64,000 nt of DNA from Selaginella moellendorffii (lineage: Eukaryota; Plantae; Lycopodiophyta), in NCBI RefSeq assembly GCF_000143415.4, contig NW_003314330.1:372001-436000 (forward strand). The letters run 5' to 3'. Under the pieces are notes generated by a model. The model worked only from the letters and a program-made list of their open reading frames with translations. It ran no database searches and had not been told where the DNA came from. Below, piece after piece: positions 2,131-23,642 of the stretch. How positions within the stretch are numbered: the first letter of the stretch is position 1; each line of letters opens with the position of its first letter. Both the position numbers and the translations under genes were made by a program.

Positions 2131-7717
<5,587 letters not shown>

Positions 7718-7720
7718 CGC

Positions 7721-7754
7721 TAAACCCTAATCTCTCTGTTTCTATAAACCCTAA
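7721..7754. promoter_or_regulatory. Telo-box motifs (AAACCCTA) adjacent to the NRPC1 start
   Basis: AAACCCTAA at ~7722 and ~7747; similar motifs lie near the starts of UBC (~25476), LYRM7 (~21192) and the membrane protein/Rab pair (~55455). Confidence 0.5.
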
Positions 7755-8129
7755 AAATCCACAAATTTAATTTCCAAATGCAATACTTTTGTCCTTCAAA
7801 TTAAACACAAGGTTATTACGGCTATTTAAGCTCGGAGTGAAGCAAAGTTTAACTCCATCGGGCCGGAAGTTGGCGAGGCCGAGAAGTTCGTAAAGACAAT
7901 GCCCGTTCGGCTAGGCGCTTGCATATTTTCTGGAACTTACATAACACAGTCAACTGGCGTTTTTTTTATGAAACGAAGCGCTATTGGAGTGAGCTAGATA
8001 AAAAGTTCCATACCTCTTCTCGTCAAAAATATTGATCGGCCTTGTGTGAGCTACTTGTACAAAACTTACGAAGCAATCCCTCTTGCTCGCTTATTCTTCG
8101 GGTTGTGCAACAATTTGAAAGGCGGATGG

Positions 8130-9772
<1,643 letters not shown>

Positions 9773-10353
9773 TTTGAGACCGTCCAGCGTCACGCACTGC
9801 AAGGCACTAGCTACTGCACCTGATCCCGAGTAAGAAATCCGTCACGACGAGCGCGAAATTTTACCTCTGCTCCCACAAACATCCCTGGATTACGCGATCG
9901 CGCAGAGAAGCAGCTCAAGATTTTCCCAGCGATCGAGAAATCTCCCAAGAACAGCGCCAGCGCCTCGCTACGACCTCCTCCCCATGGCCGTTCTTCCCAA
10001 ACCCTACTGGCGAGAGCATATTCGCTTGGCCTAAAGCAATTTTGGCCGTTACAGGCATCCACGTGGCGTCCACGTCACTAACCTAGAAATTAAGCTAGTT
10101 CCAAAGGTATCGTGGCACACTTTAAAGTTCCATCCATGTGGACACTCTGGCAAACGTTGTACTGGACGAATTTTTTTCTTTGGTCATTTTCATTTCTTTC
10201 GCCACACACTTGGGCAATCAAAAACTCTTGCAAACGAACCAACGATCAAAAGAAGAGAGAAGGAAAAAGAAGAGAAAGAATCGATCAATTCCAATCGTGC
10301 TATGGTACAATGCTGCCGCCGCCGCGATGCCCCTGGTTCTTCTTGCGAGATTT

Positions 10354-10706
10354 CTAGAAAAGATTGTAAGGGAAGGCGTCGAGCGGATGAATCAGGTATG
10401 TGAGGACGAGCGCTGCGAACATGAGCACGTACGCGATTCCTTGATCGATCGAGACCCCTGGAGAGAATAGCCCGTTAGATCGAATCTACATTGCCCAGAA
10501 CCGCAAAGATCTAGCAAGAAAGAGCGAGAAAGAGGGCCGGGGAGAGGAAATCTTGCAAAAACGCCTAGGTTTTCGCGATTTCGCGATTTCTTACCGTCGC
10601 TCTGTGGCGCTGGCGCCGGCGCTGGAGATTCTTGAGCTATGGCGACCGATCCGAGCAGTAGTAGCATCGCCGTGGCCAAGGCGGCGAGAAACCTCGACGC
10701 CTCCAT
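10354..10706 (-). CDS. Arabinogalactan peptide (AGP16/20/22/41-like, GPI-anchored), 2 exons
   Basis: Signal peptide, then QESPAPAPAPQSDG spliced to VSIDQGIAYVLMFAALVLTYLIHPLDAFPYNLF*, the conserved AG-peptide C-terminus. Confidence 0.9.
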
Positions 10707-10874
10707 CGCTACACCAAAAGAATGAACGTTCTCTAAATTATCCCTGGTCTTTAGTATGAATGACGGCTAAATGTACAAAGGTTAAAATTACCTCGCTGTT
10801 GTGGCCGTTGGATCCGGATCACACCCAAATGATTTCTGGCCGTTGGATGAAGAACAGCATTTTACAGGTTTTAT

Positions 10875-13800
10875 TTACAAAAGTTTTGACGATGTCAGTA
10901 GCAATTCTTGGAGCTTCTTCGCGTTTAGTGGCTTGCTGATGTAGCCATCCATCCCAGCAGCGATGCAGCGATCGCCATCGCCAAACATTGCGTGAGCGGT
11001 CATGGCGACGATGGGAGTGGAAGACATCCCTTTGTTCTTCTCCATCTCCCGGATCTTGGTGGTCGCTTGGAATCCATCGCAGATTGGCATTTGCACCTAG
11101 AGAGGTAGAAGATTAGAAGCTCGCCCTTGAAAGATCACGAGCAAAAGTTCTTACGTCCATCAGGATGAGATCAAACGTTTCTTGCGATGCTTTCTCGATT
11201 GCCTCGGCTCCATTGCACGCGATCACGGCCGAGTGACCCCACTTTCGAAGCAGTGATACGGCCACCCTTTGGTTGACGATGTTGTCCTCGGCTACTAAGA
11301 TCTTGAGGCTTTTGTGTTCCTCCGGAGAAGCCTCTAGCTTAGCCTGGCCGAGAGAAGCACGATCGAACGTAAAAGGAGAGTGGAAGAAAATCGAGAAACG
11401 TACTTGTTGCGAGTGCTCTATCCTTAGAGCGTCATTCTTGTGAATTCCAATAGCAGCTTGTAGTGTACGAATCAGCAAAGCACGCTTGATCGGCTTTGAT
11501 GTGTAGAGTTCCACGCCTAGATTCCGACACCTTCCATACGAGAAGAGTTTTTAGCTATTATTCCAGAAAATGGAAGTAAAAAACACTTACCTCTCACTGT
11601 CCGTGTGGTCGATCGAAGTAAGCATGATAATGGAAGGAACTTCTGTTGAGTCGACAAGCCGCGGCAGCTCCGAGGAGCCATTTTTCTCGAAGGCCTGCCT
11701 ATCGGTGTGGTGAGTTCCCGCTGGAAACTCCGGGTCGACTTCTTCGACTAGCATTTGGATTGTAGAAGAGCAGTTCCCAACGCTACCACCGCTTGACAAA
11801 TGCCTTTTGATCTCTTTGATCCGGCTTTTTCCTATCAGGCCGGGCCGCTCTTGCACGTAGTGAACTAGCTCTGCTGCTTTGCTTCCAGGCAGCCATAAAT
11901 CCACCAGTAGGACTTGAAATGGTTTCGAGTGGGAAGCAAGTTGCAAGGCATGTTTTGCATCTTCAACGGTGAGACTTGTTTCGACGATCATTCCCCAAGC
12001 CTGGAGACATGTAAGCATCGTAAATACACTTCGTAAACAAATTATCTAATTTACCTTGAGCATAGACACGAGGATTCCAAGGCTCGTGATGTGATCATCC
12101 ACCACCAAAGCCTTGATACCTTTCAAGCCATCGATCTTTGGAGACAAAGGAAGATCGCAAGAGGGTGGAATGTCAAAAGCAGCTGTGAAGTAAAATATGC
12201 TTCCTTTTCCTTCACTTTCCACCCACATTTTTCCTGCCATTGCCGCAGCAAGTTTGGAAGAGATAACTAAACCAAGTCCAGTCCCACCGTATAGCCTGCA
12301 GATAAAAAAAAAAGAAAAGAAATAAAACTGAAAATATCAGTTTTACTACGGCAAAAACCACCTTGTTGTGGACGAGTCCACTTGTGAAAAAGCTTGAAAC
12401 AACAACGATTGCTTTGCCTTTGGAATGCCAACACCTATGGAGCAAGCAGTACATGAATGTAAAACTCGTACTCTTGAAACAATAGAGGCTCACCAGTGTC
12501 TTTCACAGCGAAAATAAGTTCAACTCTATCAAGATAGATGTTGTGCACTTGAGCTGAAACCACAACTTCGCCTTTTTCAGTGAATTTGATACTATTACCT
12601 GTATAGAACGAGAAAAACATCTTTTGTAAAATAAAGAAAATGAAAAAAATAATAATTTACCTATCAAGTTCACAAATATTTGGAACAACCTCCCAGGATC
12701 TCCAATAAGTTGATCTGGAACGTCCAGGGCGGCCCTCCAAGCAATCTCAAGGCCTTTCTTATGTGCTCGAGCGGCCAGCACAGACACCGCATGCTCGAGC
12801 TGATCGTACAAAGAGAATTGTATCTCCTCCATCTCCAGCTTTCCAGCTTCGATCTTGCTGAAGTCGAGAATATCAGTGATGATTCTCAACAAATGCTTTG
12901 CCGAAAATCTAACCTGTTAGAATCTCAAAAGGTTAGTAAGCAGCAAGCGAAAGGTATAAGAACATACGAGATCCAAATACTCCTGTTGCTCCAGAGAAGT
13001 CCGTGTGTCTAAACAAAGCTCTGTGCAGTTGATGATACCGTTGAGAGGCGTTCGGATCTCATGAGACATGTTCGCCAGGAACTCGGACTTGGCCTTGTCC
13101 GCAGCAACGGCTGCATCTTTTGCCATTTGAAGCTCCACCTCAATTCGCTTGCGTTCGTCGATTTCCGAGGCAAGCTCGTCGTTTGCCCGTGCCAATGCTC
13201 TAGTTCTCTCGAACACCTGGAAACAGAAAGTCCATGTATCAGAGAGAGAGAGAGCGAGAGAGAGAGAGAGAGAGAAGTCAATGGTACCTTTTGTTCGAGT
13301 GTGGCATGGTGATTCGATATTTGGTCAGCCATGCTATTAAATATCACTTGTAGTTCATGGATCTCGTCACGAAACCAGACGCATCCAATGTTTACTCTCG
13401 CCCCCATGTCGCCTTCACCTAGAGCTGCCGCGACGCGTCCAAGCTCGATAATAGGAGAAGTAAATATCTTCAGCAATTGACAAACACGAATATTAACAAG
13501 GACTCTAGAGGAGAAAAACAAAAAGATACCTTTGCAACGCATAGAGAAGCTATAATCCCAAGTATTAGCGTTATGACGATCATAATGCTTATCACAATCT
13601 TTATATTGTCAACGGGAGCGTAAGCTTCTCGCGTGTCTACTTTCGCAAGTAGCACTGTAAAACAAAACAGAGTATAAAAACGAGGTGGTGGAACAAGGAA
13701 AAACAAACTTGTACACTGACCCCAATTTGAGTATCCCATTGGAGTATAGGCACATATCACCTTCACTCCTCTGTAGTCACGTTGGTGGAGCACTCCGGAT

Positions 13801-14926
13801 CGCTTTTGCATCACAGCGTCTAACGCTGTTTTCCAAGGCAAGCTTGTGACGTGCGGATTCATGCGTGGAGGCAGCACCAAATGAAAAGTTTTGTTGTTCA
13901 TTGGAACCCCGACGAGCAGTTCTCCAGACTTTTGCAGCCCGATCCTTTCATAAATGAGATCCGCAAGAGTTGTCGCATTGATCCTTGCAATCAGCATGCC
14001 AATCCGAGTGTCATTCTACACAAAGCCAAGCTGCAATCAAATGACAAATCACATTAAAAAACAAACTAGAGCACTCAAGAAACATGGAGCTCAAAAAGAA
14101 AAGTAAATGTGAGGGACGGGGTGAGAGACAAGTTCATAAAAGAAAACCACAGACAGGCGAGAAATCTAGGAAAAAGACGAAAGCTTACCATGTAAATCCC
14201 TTTGGAAATATTATAACTCCAGGTGTTGCCTTCAAGTATGGGAAGCTCGATGTGCACCGGACTTTTCATCTCGGGATTCTTAAACTGTAGTTTCTCCTCA
14301 AAAGTATCTTCAGTGGCGATCCGCAACTTTCCGCTCGCATCGAAGATGGCAGCACTCTTAAATTCGGAAATCGCCGAGATAGCCGACCGAAGATCATACT
14401 CCGCAGTGGCTTTGGAAACCTCTGACCGGTTTGCCAAATAATTGATAATCTGTATCCTCGAAGAAATCAAGACCATCTTGTCGATTTCACCGATGAAGTA
14501 GTCATCAACTTCCCCCCTTCTCAGAATCGATACGGCCACAAGACGCCTTTCAATCTCTTTCGAGAGCTGCTCTCGAGTCTTGAGCCATAAAACAGCAGCT
14601 AAAACTCCAGACGACAAAACAACCTGCGAAAAAACACCAAAGACTTTAGTCCAGAAGAGGAAAGAAAAAACGACCTCCTCTCAACAAGAGAAGCAACAGT
14701 GAAGTGATTGAAAGCTACTTACCAGAGTTCCAATGAAGACAGTGAGCTTAACCCAAATCGAAGACTTGAGACTCCTCCGTGGATAAGGATTCCGAGCCGA
14801 GCTCCTGGGATTGATTGAGTCGAGCTCCATCTCAGTAGCAACCGCCGACATGAATCTCTTCCCTTTAGATCCCGTCCATAGGAACTTTCGGAAATTCCTC
14901 CTCAGCGTTAACAAGCAAAAAGCCAT
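10875..14926 (-). CDS. Membrane hybrid histidine kinase (TM-dCache-like-TM-HAMP-HisKA-HATPase-REC-REC), multi-exon
   Basis: H-box [17 protein letters not shown]-box NLIGNSIKFT, G1 DTGVGI, G2 GGTGLGL, and two receivers ([17 protein letters not shown]; [18 protein letters not shown]). HAMP: [16 protein letters not shown]...[17 protein letters not shown]. Start codon uncertain (14926 or 14851). Confidence 0.92.
13241..13275 (+). repeat. (GA)n microsatellite within a histidine kinase intron
   Basis: agagagagagagagcgagagagagagagagagaga seen directly. Confidence 0.9.
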
Positions 14927-15538
14927 TTTTGCCCTGCCAGAGTATCTCTCAGCATCCGGCAAGCACCATAGGAGCTGCTCGTTAAAGAGCTCGAAACCTC
15001 GTTCTTCTCCATCACAAGGCCGGAAGATCGATGAAAAAAAAAACTCCGGAAAACTCCCACTTGCCAATTATCAAAGTATTAGATTGAACTCTTCCCAGCT
15101 ACATGAGCTCCACAGTTTGATAGCCGAGAACTGTGCCACCGACAACGACACCCTCGTTAGTTTCTCGCTTAGACCATTCTTTTGGTGAGAACGAAAGGAA
15201 AAAAACGATTAAAATGATATTTCTTTAGCATAGCGTGCTCCAATTATTGGAACTATGAACTTACCCGGTCGATCAGAGTGTGATCGTCGCTAGACAGCTA
15301 TAGCGAGAGTGTAACTTTTCACAAGATCAAAGAGATCAAAGAGCCCTAGAAAACAAATGTTAAACCAGGATCGAGGCCGGGCTACCAGAGATGGGTGCTC
15401 TCTAGCTAGAACTGGAAACTAAAGCCCTAACCACGTGGCAAATTCTAATTTCGCGCCAAAAGTCAAAATTATCCCTTGTCGCTGTCCAATGGGTGTTAGT
15501 CTAACACAGATTTTCTTAGGGGGTTTTTAGGGTTCTTG

Positions 15539-17834
15539 ATGGCCGCGTGTGGCGCATTCGAGTTCCAGGCCATCGTGGATCTCCCAAGGCGCCGGATTCA
15601 CAGGTGAGAAGCCGATTCCCAATGTAGATCGATCTCTGCGGCTAAAATGCGCGCCCAGGCCGCTCCAGCTGACCAAGTGGCGATCCGGGAGCGTGGCTCG
15701 GGCTTCTTCCCCAGGTATGATCGCAATCTCAATCTCTCAATCTTGAATCGGGCTCTTCAGCGCAAGCGCAGTTCCATGAGGCATGCAAAAGGGGGAACCT
15801 GGTACCTCTGTTCCAGCGGATATTTTCGGATCACCTGACTCCTGTGCTGGCTTATCGATGCCTGGTCAAGGAAGATGACAGGGAAGCGCCTAGCTTCTTG
15901 TTTGAATCCGTGGAGCATACAAACGGCGTCAGCAACGTCGTAAGTTTGGATTCTGGTGTCGGTATCGGTTCTAAAGCCTGGATTTTTTATTTTTTTTACC
16001 AGGGTCGCTACAGCATGGTAGGGGCGCAGCCTGCCATGGAAATTGTAGCTAAGGAAAATATGCTGACTATTATCAGCCACGAGGATGGATACGAAAACGA
16101 AAGGATAGTCAACGATCCAATGAAAGAACCGGAAGAGATCACCTCAGACTGGAGCCCAGTGCCAGTCGATGGTCTTCCAAATGTTTTCTGTGGTAAAGTT
16201 GCTAGCTATGTTTTGTGGAAGTCGGATTGACAGCGTTTTTCCAGGTGGCTGGGTCGGTTATTTCTCGTATGACACGGTGAGGTATTCCGAGAAGAAGAAG
16301 ATTCCGTTTGCTAGTGCACCCTTGGACGACAGGGGATTACCTGATATGCACTTGGGCCTCTACAAAGACGTCATCGTATTCGATCATGTTACAAAGGTGA
16401 GCTTTGTTGCAATCTTCCACTTTAATTGCTTTTCTTTTCAGATTGCGTATGCAGTTCACTGGGTCGACATCCGGAGATACGAGGATCCGAATACAGCTTT
16501 TCAGGACGGAAAGAAGCGATTGCAAGAACTTATCGATCGTGTTCAGAACACTGAAGTGTAAATATCCATCGTGTTAAGTGGTCGATGATCTCATCTTGAT
16601 GTGTTAAAGGTTCTGATGCTGCTTTTCTAGGCCGAGGCTTTCCCACGGAAATGTGAACCTGTCGGTTGGGCATTATGGGAATCGTGTCAACAAGTCTAAT
16701 ATGTCACTTGATCAGTTCAAGGGGGCCGTCTTAGCTGCTAAGGAGCACATACTTGCCGGTGACATATTCCAGATAGTATTGAGCCAGAGATTTGAGAGGA
16801 GAACCGCCGCGGATCCTTTTGACGTTTATCGAGCGTTGCGAATTGTCAATCCAAGCCCCTACATGATTTATCTGCAGGTTCGTGTCCAACTTTACGTCAA
16901 TTCAACGTGTTAACGTTCCGTGCAGGCAAGAGGCTCAATCCTGGTCGCATCAAGTCCCGAAATTCTCACACGCATCAAGCATGTAAGTCGTGGACGCTTT
17001 TTTCTGGTGGTTTGTTCTTATTTGAAGACTTTGCAGGGCAAGGTCATCAACCGACCTCTTGCGGGAACTCGAAGGAGAGGAGTTTCGGACGAGGAGGATA
17101 AGAAACTGGAGGAAAGCTTGCTAAAGGATGAGAAGGAATGTGCCGAGCATGTGATGCTGGTCGACCTTGGACGAAACGATGTCGGCAAGGTTCATATACT
17201 TCGCGTTGTTTTGTTTTCCTCCTGTTCTGATTTTGATTTTTAAGTGCGCAGGTTTCCAAGGCAGGATCCGTGCAGGTTGAAAAGTTTATGGAAGTCGAGC
17301 GCTACTCACATGTGATGCACATCAGCTCTACGGTATGGTCTCATCCTCGCTCTTTTTATATTTTCCACTTTCTGAATGCTCAGGTGACCGGAGAGTTACA
17401 AGAGGGACTCTCATCGTGGGACGCTCTTCGCGCAGCGCTACCGGTTGGAACAGTTAGCGGTGCTCCGAAGGTACTTATACAGGCAAATTGTGCTCTAATG
17501 GGCGCTTTGTTTTCACCATCAGGTGAGAGCCATGCAACTGATAGACGAGCTGGAAGTTGCTCGACGCGGGCCGTATAGTGGTGGCATCGGCTCAATATCT
17601 TTCAATGGAGACATGGACGTAGCACTTGCTCTTCGTACGATGGTGTTTCCCACAAGTTCCCAGGACAAGAATGGTTCTTGGTTAGCTCATCTTCAAGCGG
17701 GGGCCGGCGTTGTCGCTGATAGCATTCCGGACGAGGAGTACAACGAGACGGTAAACAAAGCAGCGGGTTTGGGACGAGCAATCGACCTTGCGGAGACAGC
17801 GTTTCCGGCCGAGAAGCTCATGGAGGTCTCATAA
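15539..17834 (+). CDS. ASA1: Anthranilate synthase alpha subunit (plastid), multi-exon
   Basis: [100 protein letters not shown]. The first exons (transit peptide) are inferred from a 15604-15658 intron. Confidence 0.95.
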
Positions 17835-18406
17835 AGCTATGTTCTCTCTCTCCTTTTTCTAACTTCCAGTGCGATAATACGACAATGTCCTGGAGAAAAA
17901 ATCAAACTTGGGGGTAAGCTTTTCCTTCGTCGTTTGTTCCTTTCACTTTTGGACTTTGTAGAGTGGAAGTCGAAAGCCATGGGATTACTTTTGGAAGGTT
18001 CCTTCTTAAAACGCATCAAGCAAGCGGCGCCGGAGAGAAACAAGCAAAAAAAAAACGCGAGAATCTCTTGTTTGAGGTGGACTGCACTAAGAACAATCGC
18101 GTGATCATTGATCCGGACTTGTGGGATTTTAAAAAGGCGTGGCCTTCATTGGAAATGCTTTTCTATGTTTTGTGCGTGGATCGATATCGTTGTGTTGTAG
18201 CAGTCGGGTTCACACTAGCCCAGTGCACACGGGGATATTCTCGGAGAACAGCTTTAAATCTGTAGGATATTCCCTCCAGACCTCACAGAGATTCGCTACC
18301 CAGTTATTCTTCCCGGATTTGATGAGAAAAATATTTGTTGTTTGTCATGATTTGGGGCGCTCGTACGGCGAGGCCGTTTCGACACCGAAACATCCGTGGG
18401 GCTGTC

Positions 18407-18618
18407 TGACACGTGTCACCATCCTGGCGGTTTACAGGCCTGGAATGCCCAGCGCCTTGGTATTATGCCGCGCACGCGTTTGGGCGCGCAGACTCCCGTT
18501 AACTGGTCGACACGTGGCAGGTCCCATGCCGTTGGATCTGCCGGATTTTAAATATCTCCGTCAGCTGACCTTGGCACCGTATGTGGCACTGGTAAGACCG
18601 TTCGATCCTGACACGTGG
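18407..18618 (+). promoter_or_regulatory. Cluster of three GACACGTG G-box/ABRE motifs upstream of the TIFY gene
   Basis: CACGTG at 18410, 18511 and 18612, each preceded by GA. Confidence 0.5.
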
Positions 18619-19341
18619 ACAGGCTTGTGTCTGATGATGCTCAAGGCTATGGCTTGCGCGAGCGGATTGTCCCTCCCATCCCTCGTTCTTGCGGGATTGG
18701 AGCTAGGGTTATTGTCTCGCCGCTAGGGCCTGCTAAGGGCGACGACGATCTCCAGCGCGGCCGGCGCGCCACAGGTGGCTCGATTCTTCGCGTCTTGTTC
18801 TCTCCGGCGGCTGGCTTGTGAGCTCGAAGCTCCTCTTCGTGATTCCAGGGCCGTGCTACGGTAGGTCTGTAGAAATCTCATGGATGGAGAGGGCTTAGAG
18901 TACAGTGGGCTGCTGGAATGGAATTCCAGTCGAGTGTGAATGATCTCGCGGCCCAGGAGGATGAGTGGGAATGCTTGCCGGTTTAAAGCCGCATTATGGT
19001 GAGCTCCATAGATAGATGATAGATCTCGTCCGGCAAGGTGAGCGGGATTTCGTGGTACATCCACACAGCTGGTCGCTATTTAAGAAATTTGGCCTGGGCT
19101 CCTCCTGGATTGCCACTGCTGCCATCAATTCCTCTTTTTGAGAGTCAAGCGATTTCTCCAAGTCCAGGTTAGCGGCTTCATTTATTTCTTCCCTTCCAGT
19201 TTTTTTGTTTCTTCCTCTTCCTCGTTTTTCTTTTTTCTTTTTACTGGAGCTAACGAACAGTGATCGCTGACGATGCTCCAGGCACCCAAGGGTGATGCAC
19301 ACATATTTTGTACCATTCGGCTGACTTGAAGTGGCGATGAG

Positions 19342-20973
19342 ATGAGCTTAGTGGTTATGGAGGAGCAAAGTCAACCTGTCTTTCGGGATTTTTTGGGCTC
19401 GTCAGCGGCCCCCAATCCAGAGACAAAGCAGCCGGAGCTGTCGGCGACGGACTCGGTCAGGGTTTCGCAAAACAGTGGCTTCATGGAGCAAGAGGATGGA
19501 GAGGCGTCTGTAAGAGGGGGATCCACATTCTCGGCGCCATGTCCATCGTCGGCCCCAGGTCCCAGCTTCCCGGCCTCATCCGACCCAGGAACGGGTAAAG
19601 TTTTTCTCCGTCACGGCTACGGAGCTATGAAGCTGACAGTCTCTTGTCTTTTCACAGAGCTCTGGCGCCATGGCAAAGCTCCTGCTGGTATGCCATTTAG
19701 TCATGCCATCAAGGCTGCTAATTGCGTGAATGATGACGTTACGAGGAAACGGGAGGAGCTTGCAAACAGGGCTGCTTTCAGGGAGAATGATATGATGGAG
19801 GGCTCGCGTCCTAGCAAGGTATGGTTGCTCCAATCTCGCTTACAGAAATATCTCACCCTCTCTTTCTTTTCTTGTTTCAAGGCTTCCCGGTTTAAGCAAA
19901 GAGAAAACGAGACCCTTCCAAGTACAGGTGATTTCGGCCTCACGATGCAGCCTCCTCGAACCTCGCAAGCTGGAGGTAACTTGTGGCTCCAAACTTCGGT
20001 TTTTAATCCGTCCACGGGTACGTCGAAGCGGATAGAATCTTCCAGGCCGACTTCGGGCGTGCCTATGCTAGCTCGTCCTATGCAAGCCACCTCGGGTGCT
20101 ACCGCAGGTGCTACTGCTGGCGGGGTGTTTTCGCGCAACCCTGCGAGCAGCATTCTGCCTCCTCCAGCGGACGAGGGATCTAGAACAGGTTTGCAAGGTG
20201 GTGGCATCGCAGCACTCATCAACAGCGCTAATGCCAAGCTGCCGTCGGCAAGACCGCTCGCTGAGCCTCCGGCGCTCGAGCGCACTGCTAGTCTGGACAG
20301 ACCGAAGCCTCCTCTCCAAAATGGAGGCTCAGATTCTTTACTGCCCTCGTAAGCTAACTCTACATCTTCGAGTCACTGCGAAACAAAGCTAATGTTTTTC
20401 CTTGCCGCAGACACAAGACTTCGACAACGTCAGCTACTCGGCAGCTGACAATATTCTACGGGGGACATGCTCATGTGTTTGACGATGTATCTCCGGAAAA
20501 GGTGAGAAGAAACTCCCAAGTCAATTTTATTTTTTTATTCTTTTTTCCTTTCTCATGCTTTGGCTTTGATCGTGGCATTCCAGGCAGACGCGATCATGCA
20601 AATGGCTGGCTCCAACGGGAGATCGTGGTCCACGACGTATGCTCATCGATCCTCGCGGTCCGAGGGCTCTCTGGCCGATCTCCGACGAGAGAAAGCCGCG
20701 ATTGGCGCGACCTCACTGACGGTTCCATCGGAGAACCAAAACGCTCCTTCGAATCTCCAGCGCAAGCACAGGATTCCCCCCGACCACCACACTGTCAAAG
20801 TCGGGATTCCTGGAGACGTGCCAGTTCCTTCAGGTACTTCCAAACAGCTCCAAAGTTGTTCTAAAGCGTTCTTTTCCTTAACTTCGCAGGCATTCCAATT
20901 GGAGATGGAAATCGATTCGCAATGGCCAACGGCCGAGCCCCTGCTGGACTTCACGGCTCCTTCTACAACATGA
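19342..20973 (+). CDS. TIFY8: TIFY-domain protein, TIFY8-like (no Jas motif seen), multi-exon
   Basis: N-terminal PVFRDFLG, PPPADEGSRTG, and spliced RQLTIFYGGHAHVFDDVSPEK-ADAIMQMAGSNGRSWST match the TIFY8 subfamily. The 3' end is uncertain (20864 or 20973). Confidence 0.85.
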
Positions 20974-21204
20974 AAGAGGTAAAAAAAAACCTCTTTTTTG
21001 GTGGATTTATGCTGAAAGATTGGATTTCTTTGCATTGCAGACCGCTAGCAATGGCCAGCACTGGCTATAGACAGGTTTGGCACTAGGTAGTGTAAATTAT
21101 GACAACATCGAGCTTTTACAATTTTCTCGCCTTCCATTGGCTGCGTGGCACTGTGACGTGGAGCTGATGTGTACTAGGGCTTCGCAATTTCTAGGGTTTG
21201 TGCG

Positions 21205-21559
21205 ATGGCTGAGGCGCGCTCGGTAATGCGGGCGCTGCTGCGCGCCCGGAAGGTCGCATTCAAGGGCGACAGGCCGATGATCGACGCGGCCGCGAAGCAC
21301 GTACGATCGATCTTCGAGGAGCGGCGGCGGGTGAGCGATCCGGTGGAGCTTGAGAAGAATCTCCAGGAGGGGCGGGAGGCGGCGCAATACCTGGTGGAGA
21401 ATGTAATCCAAGCCAAGAGGAATTCGCAAGGCCACTACGGTAAGCAGATTCTCTAGTCCCTCTTGTGATTATTGAACCATAGCGATGGTATGGTTTTCTC
21501 TAGCAATGGGCTTAAAGAAGGAACACATGGGAATGGAATTTGAGGGAGCGTCTCGATAA
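21205..21559 (+). CDS. Mitochondrial LYR-motif protein, Mzm1/LYRM7-like (complex III Rieske chaperone), 2 exons
   Basis: MRALLRARKVAFKGD...VRSIFEE...EAAQYLVENVIQAK; exon 2 AMGLKKEHMG...*. Confidence 0.8.
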
Positions 21560-21957
21560 GCTCGTTGGTATAGATTCTACTTTTTGCTACTTCCTACTGA
21601 TTGCTGGAATCCTGGATGCTTTCAATAACCTTTTGACATTTTTGTCATTTTTTTTTTTTTGAGATATGCAATACTTTTTGGCTGAAAACCTTTATACCTT
21701 CTTCGTTGTTATTTGACAAATGCAAATAAACCATTGTATGTTAAAAGAATAAACCTAAACCTCTAAACACTATTAGGCATTAAGGACAGGTTTGTAACCT
21801 CAGCATCGCTTTTCCGAAGGATTTGAGAGGCCTCAAAGGGAGTTGGAGAGTATGGAGTGTCTATCAATTAATCATCCAGAATGCCGATCCAAGGTAGTAG
21901 TGCATGTGAAACTCTCTTGTAAAATTTGAATTGAATATGAAGTTTATGAACCTTTCG

Positions 21958-23642
21958 TTATGTAGCTTGCAGCTTTATTCTCTTGTAGCCTTCTCTTTGC
22001 TTGGAAAGCATCATATCAGCGGATATGCTGTTGGCCAGCGTGCATACCTTTCGAGGTCTTGGCCCATTTCTTGGTAGTGTGAGCTCGTGTCCGGGCAAGC
22101 TGGATTCCAGCGTCATCCGCTGCGCTTCTGGTGGTGGCACCGGTTTGAACTTGAGCAGCTTCCCATACTCTCGGAGCAGCTGAAGCATGTACTGGTACAC
22201 GAAGTCCATGCTGAGATCTTTGTCTAGAAATGACTTTGCACATTCCCCAATTGCAGCGGCCTGGAGCACGAGAGGGTTTACGGACTATTGTTGACTAAGG
22301 CGAGATCCAAAGTCTTACCTCCTTCGGGTGAGCATTTCCCCAGTCGACAGCAAACTTAGTCGAGTTGCAAATGTTGTCTCTATCCACAGGCCAAAAATGA
22401 ACGAAAGGAATCAGTGACCGGGCGAAGAACTCCTGAAACATCGGCTCGATTTGTAGGACTGTTGAACCGCATGCCAATATGTACTTGAAACTGACAGACC
22501 ATCCTCCTCCTTGGACATAAATCTTATACCTGAAACAGAGTCACCCTCAGCAAGCAATCAACCAAATGAAACACCTGTGTTGGCACTGTTTTGACAAGTC
22601 TGAATTGTTAAAATTGCGTTCCCTTTCAGCAAACCAGTCCTGCACAGGTCATTGTAACATTTTCAAGCCTTTTGACAGAATTCACTCACCTGGTGGTATG
22701 TTACGAGGTTGTAGTTGTGCGTGTTGTTGGCGGTGCATTTGACCAAGTCCGCTCTAGCCGGACCCATGTCGTAGTTCCCCTTCCAGAATGCTATCGGCTG
22801 CCTGTGTGACCAATCTAGTTTCTTGGCTCCAGAAAAGATTTTTCCCTTTTCTAAACTCCAGGGAAGGATATTAACTTCTGGCCTGTACACCAGAGTGCAT
22901 GCTCAGTTCCGAAACGACCAAAAACACTCAGACTCACCATCCCCAATAGGACCAATCTGGAAACACAATGTCGTAGTGGTCACCTCTGCTGGTGCAATAA
23001 AGGAACAGTGGCGGAGGAGGCCAGGATCCATTCTTCTCAGGCTGGTGCTCCGCTCTGAACACGAGTGGCCAATCTCCGCAGTTGAACATGAGGTCAACGT
23101 CAGGAACCATCCCTGGATACTCTTTCAGCAGCATTAGCAAACCCCACAGCGTGAAATCATCCCGGGTTTCGAAGCACTTATTGTATCGCTCCATGTAGAG
23201 AGTCCCGTTAACTATTACTACACGGAAATCTGCTTTGGATCGAGCATCTTGGAGGTTTTGTTGGGAAATCCCTGTTTCTTTCCAAGGTGCGAGATCATTC
23301 TCAATCCAGGCGAAGTACGAAGGGCATTGATTTTCCGAATTTGGGGATAGACATCTCTGGAGCTCCCGCAGATCGCTCTTCTGCAGCCTGAAGAAAGAGC
23401 CTGGAGAATCTGAAGCAGAAGCGGACTCCTGACTGCTCAAGGTCCAGGTCCAATCCCAGTTCCAGTTCCAATTCACAGCCTTCAATTCAAAATCCAAGCA
23501 GCCAATTAACGCGAATTTCTCTTGAGAAGCTCACCTGAAGATGCTCCGTAACGAAGACGAATAAGATCAGCGTAACAATGATAACAATCCCGGGCTTGCT
23601 GAGCTTCCTCCAAAGAGGCGAAATCGCAGTGAACTCCACCAT
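21958..23642 (-). CDS. Glycosyltransferase family 90 (CAP10/POGLUT-like) type II membrane protein
   Basis: N-terminal TM, CPSYFAWIENDLAPW, VPDVDLMFNCGDWP, DIVFPDWSYWGW, YKIYVQGGGWSVSFKYILAC, VYQYMLQLLREYGKL. Confidence 0.9.

Follow-up and report, generated by a model that had tools for sequence, protein, structure and literature searches.

In the 64,000-nucleotide window of Selaginella moellendorffii DNA analysed here (contig NW_003314330.1, positions 372,001 to 436,000), the minus strand of 10875-14926 carries a gene that we read as a putative plasma-membrane receptor. Specifically, it would be a functional hybrid histidine kinase with a double-Cache sensor and a HAMP domain, which is of bacterial ancestry and has become an ordinary nuclear gene of the plant. 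We assign this reading, together with the mechanism and history proposed below, a probability of roughly 80%. The results support the overall interpretation of a first-pass annotation, which had described an intron-rich kinase with a bacterial-type sensor in a seed-free plant; the host is indeed Selaginella. Three outcomes had been named beforehand as refuting that interpretation, namely a CHASE-type sensor, nesting of the kinase among the plant AHK proteins, and membership of an already characterised class. On all three the findings favoured the earlier interpretation, although for the AHK proteins the evidence is indirect.

To construct a splice model, we translated the minus strand of 10700-15100 in its three frames and linked open segments across GT..AG sites. 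The model runs from an ATG at 14926 to the stop codon at 10877-10875 and comprises 14 exons and 13 introns. All introns are of the GT..AG type and 54-173 nucleotides (nt) long, and the coding sequence (CDS) of 3108 nt specifies a protein of 1035 amino acids (aa). The parts of the gene are listed below, with TM1 and TM2 denoting the two transmembrane helices.

10875..14926, minus strand: complete CDS of the hybrid histidine kinase (splice model, RefSeq protein P0072 and spliced contigs)
14723..14926, minus strand: exon 1, aa 1-68; cytoplasmic N-terminal tail and start of TM1
14189..14623, minus strand: exon 2, aa 69-213; remainder of TM1, then the long N-terminal helix and the greater part of the membrane-distal Cache module
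14016..14030, minus strand: alternative acceptor for intron 2 (three of the four runs show the joint 14030/14189; translation)
13721..14015, minus strand: exon 3, aa 214-312; remaining part of the distal module, then the membrane-proximal Cache module, with TGE and DYRG..AY.P.GY..W conserved
13530..13654, minus strand: exon 4, aa 312-353; last sensor strand and helix (EAYAP), TM2
13288..13467, minus strand: exon 5, aa 354-413; HAMP (Pfam)
12968..13216, minus strand: exon 6, aa 414-496; coiled-coil signalling helix and first HisKA helix, with the His465 codon at 13063-13061
12055..12913, minus strand: exons 7-10 (12913-12661, 12598-12494, 12434-12362, 12295-12055), aa 497-720; second HisKA helix, HATPase_c and start of receiver 1 (DD 706-707)
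11404..12000, minus strand: exons 11-12 (12000-11591, 11530-11404), aa 721-899; receiver 1 with Asp754 (codon 11901-11899), insertion, Thr848 and Lys869, then a linker
10875..11343, minus strand: exons 13-14 (11343-11155, 11096-10875), aa 900-1035; receiver 2 with E918/D919, Asp962 (codon 11157-11155), Thr995 and Lys1017

From the N- to the C-terminus, the protein consists of TM1, an extracellular domain of ~250 aa, TM2, HAMP, a coiled coil, HisKA, HATPase_c and two receivers. This order, like the presence of over a dozen small canonical introns, had been recognised in the first-pass annotation and was borne out, but its estimate of ~280 aa for the sensor was too high. Two hydrophobic segments (~aa 57-83 and ~329-352) bracket a loop nearer 250 aa, which includes the DYRG...NW stretch that is split by intron 3, as had been noted. 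The Pfam scan, the searches and the structural modelling were run on the product of the other allele, P0072, as a stand-in; it is the protein of the RefSeq gene LOC9658361 of S. moellendorffii, equal in length to the window product and 98.6% identical to it (14 residue differences).

HAMP, HisKA, HATPase_c and two Response_reg domains all scored above their Pfam cut-offs. The HAMP domain (PF00672) lies directly after TM2 and reached 32.3 bits on exon 5 and 28.6 bits on P0072 aa 351-404, with a cut-off of 25, while HisKA was placed at aa 455-520 (E=8e-14 on exon 6), HATPase_c at aa 567-678 and the second of the two Response_reg stretches at aa 914-1027. The kinase motifs are complete, with His465 in SHEIRTP, N582 in the N box, DTGVGI as G1, FQAFSQ as F and GGTGLGL as G2, and so are the receiver residues (D706/D707, D754, T848 and K869 in receiver 1; E918/D919, D962, T995 and K1017 in receiver 2). 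By sequence this is a hybrid kinase, in which H, N, G1, F and G2 boxes are fused to receivers holding the DD-D-T-K set. In an alignment of 25 family members the kinase boxes and the Asp/Thr/Lys sets of both receivers were invariant or nearly so. No HPt domain was found C-terminal to receiver 2. Between Asp754 and Thr848, receiver 1 contains a poorly conserved insertion of roughly 60-90 aa (aa ~775-840, window 11591-12000), which is lacking in the bacterial protein P0222 discussed below.

Transcript contigs from four runs, each of a different study, were placed on 10800-15000 (4201 letters). The first-pass annotation had proposed such a reconstruction of the spliced protein, and the contigs of all four studies agreed with the model. 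Eleven of the 13 introns were absent from the contigs, with borders exactly as predicted (CT..AC on the plus strand). The joints of introns 5 and 9 are not listed because both introns hold simple repeats that were masked, a (GA)n/(CT)n microsatellite in intron 5 (window 13234-13283) and an A-rich run in intron 9 (12297-12333). However, a 2632-nt contig extending from exon 3 into the 3' untranslated region (UTR) is as long as the sum of exons 3-14 plus UTR, and these two introns are therefore spliced out as well. That the runs represent RNA is a guess, yet DNA would have retained the introns. The gene is real and expressed. In three of the four runs the alternative acceptor at 14030 was used, which inserts 15 nt reading LGFV-stop; the isoform would end after ~217 residues, within the sensor domain. 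As judged by translation it is a truncated or nonsense form, so that part of the transcripts is nonsense.

The extracellular domain is predicted to be a double-Cache fold, and neither a CHASE domain nor a NarX-type helix bundle. An AlphaFold model of P0072 residues 80-335, made with a 50-sequence alignment (pLDDT 90.9, pTM 0.86), shows a 42-residue helix (2-43) followed by two alpha/beta modules. When this model was compared with the PDB by Foldseek, the best 50 matches were all dCache ligand-binding domains (E down to 8e-11), and an exhaustive VIA-align pass gave Z values of 18.1 for Tlp1, 18.0 for DvhD and 17.6 for PctA, down to 13.8 for KinD. Twenty-seven tandem-PAS (dCache-type) entries outranked the CHASE domain of AHK4 (3T4J), which came 28th at Z 12.9. 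A shape search of the ESM Atlas returned solely bacterial sensor proteins, most of them with HAMP, at TM-scores of 0.79-0.87 by query over all 256 residues; a protein language-model search of the sensor likewise returned solely bacterial Cache/HAMP clusters, and a sequence-profile search of the PDB gave weak dCache matches (E about 1e-3).

These comparisons are in agreement with the Pfam results. At E<=1, dCache_1 was the only family reported for the sensor region, and CHASE (PF03924), PilJ, NIT and four-helix-bundle or NarX-type families were all absent from it. The earlier view that the sensor is not a CHASE domain is thus confirmed by both approaches. With exon-by-exon queries the dCache_1 match was merely a 13-bit hint, and it became clear with full-length relatives and the structure model. 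Over the full dCache_1 model the Sphagnum ortholog scored 50.1 bits, which passes the cut-off, the Selaginella paralog 37.6 and the bacterial protein P0025 66; in sequence terms P0072 is best described as a divergent member of dCache_1. The sensors of the CHASE receptors AHK4/CRE1 likewise consist of a long helix and two PAS-like modules, and these receptors end in a receiver-like domain followed by a receiver. The present protein differs from them in having no Pfam CHASE match, a fold nearer to bacterial dCache domains and a HAMP domain.

Conservation in the sensor is concentrated in the membrane-proximal module (TGE; DYRG..V..AY.P.GY..WG..AK.D..EAY.P), a pattern common to the bacterial relatives. 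The same double-Cache fold occurs in the dCache_1AA amino-acid sensors (PctA, Tlp3, Mlp24/37; eukaryotic alpha2delta/CACHD1), and PctA, Tlp3 and Mlp24 were among the best structural matches. In these sensors amino acids are bound by an AA_motif located within the distal module, Y-x4-R-x-W(Y) ... Y ... D, and all eukaryotic dCache_1 proteins found by Gumerov et al. in 2022 carry a VWA insertion (PMC8915833). Here there is no VWA insertion, and a regular-expression scan for YxxxxRxW, which forms the AA_motif's N-terminal part, found it in none of 26 streptophyte sensor domains. Judged by this pattern, ligand binding via the dCache_1AA amino-acid motif is excluded for the family. The sensor is a putative binder of small molecules.

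Outside the plant family described below, the closest relatives of this protein are bacterial. All proteins ranking next after the family come from bacteria, and hundreds of bacterial kinases outscored any canonical AHK in the searches. Across the kinase core (aa 440-690) the protein shares 60-67% identity with hybrid kinases from Planctomycetota, Candidatus Binatia, Tectomicrobia and unnamed metagenome-assembled genomes (MAGs), which reached 313-330 bits compared to 191 bits for the cytoplasmic construct of CRE1 (PDB 7P8E; PMC8498639). This is in line with the earlier placement of the kinase outside the canonical AHKs with angiosperm orthologs, as judged by hit ranking alone, since none of them was present in the best hits.

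Several bacterial proteins have the same domain order plus a C-terminal HPt domain, the best of them being P0222. It is encoded by an uninterrupted open reading frame (ORF) of 3147 nt on a MAG contig, beside another hybrid kinase and a DUF1501 gene, and this uninterrupted ORF and these neighbours are the reason why we call it bacterial. Its alignment with the Selaginella protein is collinear, with 39% identity over 756 aa from TM1 through receiver 1, 42% through receiver 2 and 63% in the core. The bacterial dCache-HAMP likeness claimed in the first-pass annotation therefore holds for the fold (Z 14-18 against bacterial dCache domains), for the HAMP domain and for the collinear P0222. More generally, bacterial dCache_1-HAMP hybrid kinases (P0025, P0230 and P0237 from Planctomycetota/Pirellulales MAGs; P0222) share the domain order from TM1 to receiver 2 and the proximal-module motif TGE / DYRG..AY.PVGY..WG..AK.D..EAY.P, with identities of 35-39% full-length and of 50-63% for the kinase core. 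In contrast to these uninterrupted ORFs with their terminal HPt domain, the plant gene is split by 13 introns, and its product lacks HPt, begins with a cytoplasmic N-terminal tail and carries the receiver 1 insertion. A related kinase core was also observed in P0104 and its cluster (JGI metagenomes, ~1700 aa), joined to amino-acid permease domains (PF13520, PF00324), HAMP and PAS; by its domain content this cluster looks like a transporter-sensor fusion.

The distribution of the family was studied by an exhaustive phmmer search with exon 3 against 1.84 billion representative proteins, which gave 57 hits, and by further word-index searches with the paralog's sensor, the kinase core and a family profile. 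A score gap bounds the family, with members at 990 bits or more and the next proteins at 918 or less. Selaginella has exactly two paralogs, which are 63% identical to one another. The other members were found in mosses (Physcomitrium, Ceratodon, Sphagnum), ferns (Adiantum, Ceratopteris, Pteridium) and Zygnematophyceae (Closterium, Mesotaenium, Spirogloea); the fern and moss orthologs sit on chromosome-scale scaffolds, and in the kinase core Selaginella and mosses share 80-84% identity. No protein of a seed plant, liverwort, hornwort or Klebsormidium and no canonical AHK appeared in any hit list. In particular, seed-plant and AHK1-like proteins were absent from the 57 exon-3 hits, the 34 sensor hits and the best 120 matches each of the kinase core and the family profile. 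The protein P0105 from a JGI metagenome contig of 2586 nt, which bears the label of a bacterial-style histidine kinase, matches the kinase core at 82% identity and falls within the moss clade; its placement makes it look like moss DNA in an environmental sample and not like a bacterial relative.

Maximum-likelihood trees (LG+C20, with SH-aLRT as the only support) were calculated twice for the kinase core and once for the sensor. In each of them the streptophyte proteins formed a single clade with an SH-aLRT of 100, which was embedded in bacterial hybrid kinases. Zygnematophyceae, Selaginella, mosses and ferns were separate subclades in a species-like topology, and the embryophyte sensor clade had a support of 99. 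In the second kinase tree Spirogloea was disregarded, as its row had been taken from the wrong segment and had a branch length of 10; its sensor domain was placed normally. The family is one clade of Zygnematophyceae, mosses, Selaginella and ferns.

Exact exon structures were then compared for P0072, its paralog, the Ceratodon ortholog and the Closterium ortholog. At least nine of the 13 introns agree between all four genes in both alignment column and phase, two more lie within 1-3 columns of each other, and one is located in a variable linker. As alga, moss and Selaginella have these positions in common, the gene must be an old nuclear resident. Both trees and intron positions fit an ancient acquisition, before the split between Zygnematophyceae and land plants, and the earlier suggestion of a horizontal acquisition followed by intronisation is compatible with both.

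Several points weigh against the receptor reading and are taken into account in its probability. In P0072 itself dCache_1 (PF02743) scored 22.5 bits, or 27.9 for the excised domain, which is below the Pfam gathering cut-off of 45; the fold call therefore rests on the predicted structure and the relatives. The model was made from the 98.6% identical allele and not from the window's own residues. The distal module, which is the usual ligand site of double-Cache sensors, is variable among the family. Since this module is poorly conserved while the proximal one is conserved, the family may sense different things, or nothing soluble. The trees were made by a quick method and without AHK1, CKI1 and AHK2-5, so that only the ranking of scores sets the family apart from those groups. 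They did not resolve the bacterial sister group or donor, and the planctomycete proteins of the same architecture were scattered and not sister to the family in the kinase-core tree. Finally, the absence from seed plants, liverworts and hornworts is taken from hit lists, not genomes.

Among the alternatives, the one closest in architecture is a divergent osmosensor of the AHK1/HK1/Sln1 type, that is a hybrid kinase with TM-dCache-TM topology that senses osmotic or turgor stress rather than a specific ligand. AHK1, poplar HK1a/b and yeast Sln1 are credited with a dCache_1-type extracellular domain of ~250-300 aa between two TM helices, and their C-terminal receiver feeds an HPt protein (PMC10093795, PMC6944256). 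The first-pass annotation omitted this ectodomain from its list of angiosperm kinase classes. The overall topology and the C-terminal receiver are indeed the same, and a poorly conserved distal pocket might suit a sensor with no ligand to bind. However, bacterial proteins and not AHK1-like ones fill the four hit lists, the AHK1 domain scheme has no HAMP (PMC10093795), and the family was not found in seed plants, in which AHK1 is conserved across angiosperms. The RefSeq name of the gene is not histidine kinase 1 either. AHK1 was set apart here by hit ranking and published description, and we regard this alternative as improbable.

The gene could also be a decaying or rewired relic, which is transcribed but no longer acts as a phosphorelay receptor and serves, for example, as a phosphatase or scaffold only. 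The ethylene receptors and CSK of plants are rewired kinases and offer a model for such a fate. The isoform with the premature stop, the long variable insertion in receiver 1 and the loss of the family in several plant lineages would fit this idea. Against this, all catalytic motifs of kinase and receivers are intact and conserved in alga, mosses, lycophyte and ferns, the kinase core of Selaginella is very similar to that of mosses, and the two haplotypes differ in the CDS by 18 synonymous and 14 non-synonymous codons (dN/dS 0.23). A relic is therefore quite improbable. Bacterial contamination, a recent transfer or an assembly artefact has in its favour that the similarity to bacteria is very high for a plant gene, reaching 67% in the core with full-length collinearity. 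This possibility is already refuted by the removal of 13 spliceosomal introns in transcripts, by the assembly of both haplotypes with the same plant neighbours, by the orthologs on chromosome-scale fern and moss scaffolds and by the intron positions in common with an alga.

NarX-type nitrate sensors have a periplasmic four-helix bundle with a P box, and the gene might belong to a plant group described in such terms. Kabbara et al. defined plant kinase groups in 2018, among them 'NarX-like' nitrate/nitrite sensor kinases with two genes in Selaginella (SmoelHK12, SmoelHK15), one in the moss Physcomitrella and two in Klebsormidium, for which they suggested horizontal transfer (PMC6324907). Their topology of N-terminal TM, periplasmic domain, TM and HAMP, the suggested bacterial origin and the presence of exactly two Selaginella paralogs match the present family. 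A kinase sensing nitrate through a NarX-type domain is nonetheless very improbable here, since the modelled sensor is an alpha/beta tandem-PAS (dCache) fold and not a four-helix bundle, Pfam reported no family of the latter kind, and no Klebsormidium protein was found in any search. The 'NarX-like' genes may still be the present genes under another label. If so, their domain label is wrong, while nitrate would still be possible as a ligand. As for membership of a characterised class, our literature search retrieved no paper that characterises the family or recognises it as a Cache receptor, but the gene is already annotated in RefSeq (LOC9658361) and may be listed by Kabbara et al. (PMC6324907). 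Ryo et al. noted in 2018 that mosses have kinases with architectures unknown in seed plants, none of which had been studied at that time (PMC6137987).

For the preferred reading, a bacterial-derived double-Cache/HAMP receptor, the following mechanism can be proposed from what is known of this type of kinase. A ligand or physical cue would act on the extracellular double-Cache domain, and the resulting change would travel via TM2 to the four-helix bundle of HAMP and on to the coiled coil. Together, HAMP and the coiled coil would set the balance between autokinase and phosphatase activities of the dimeric HisKA-HATPase core. His465 would be phosphorylated, and the phosphoryl group would pass to Asp962 of receiver 2, possibly via Asp754 or modulated by it. 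Because the protein is without the HPt domain of its bacterial look-alikes, the signal is likely to be handed to free plant HPt proteins, and from there to response regulators. As to its history, a bacterial hybrid kinase would have been acquired before Zygnematophyceae and land plants diverged; introns would then have been gained and the HPt domain lost, with vertical inheritance afterwards, duplications in Selaginella, mosses and ferns, and an apparent loss in seed plants.

A more far-reaching proposal, which we make tentatively and consider rather doubtful, is that the family is an orphan receptor of the plant lineage. A chemoreceptor-type sensor kinase of bacteria would then have been captured before the colonisation of land and have persisted for more than half a billion years in algae, mosses, lycophytes and ferns. 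Its input would be a chemical cue from outside the cell, perhaps a metabolite from microbes or soil, which it would pass on to the same relay of HPt proteins and response regulators that serves cytokinin, and seed plants would have discarded it. Accounts of two-component signalling in plants usually cover cytokinin, ethylene, AHK1, CKI1, AHK5 and phytochrome. To this list the family would add a further, intact class of receptor whose ectodomain is of a typical ligand-binding kind. Plant kinases with a Cache sensor are no novelty in themselves; the family stands out by its HAMP domain, its bacterial-grade kinase core and its phyletic pattern. It would also represent a datable capture of a bacterial gene by a streptophyte, marked by common introns and by an HPt domain given up in favour of free HPt proteins. 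As an orphan receptor it would be tractable, with orthologs in Physcomitrium and an ectodomain that models well, and the identity of its ligand would reveal something that early land plants sensed and seed plants have since dropped. Two corrections to the literature may follow, one to the possible 'NarX-like' label and the other to the claim that a VWA insertion is present in all eukaryotic dCache_1 proteins.

The surroundings of the gene are those of a plant locus. Window positions 3098-22822 are collinear with S. moellendorffii scaffold GL377589.1 around P0072, at 97.9-98.1% identity and with about 50 small indels over 14 kb. Because of this collinearity and identity, the window appears to represent the second haplotype of S. 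moellendorffii or an accession very close to it. The neighbouring genes are typical of plants and include those for a chorismate-binding enzyme, a tify/JAZ protein, an arabinogalactan peptide (AGP), a protein kinase and an RNA polymerase large subunit. A short ORF at 10392-10706 on the minus strand, ~170 nt downstream of the kinase gene, encodes a signal peptide and the motif SPAPAPAP; it corresponds to the AGP gene called at the same place in the other haplotype.

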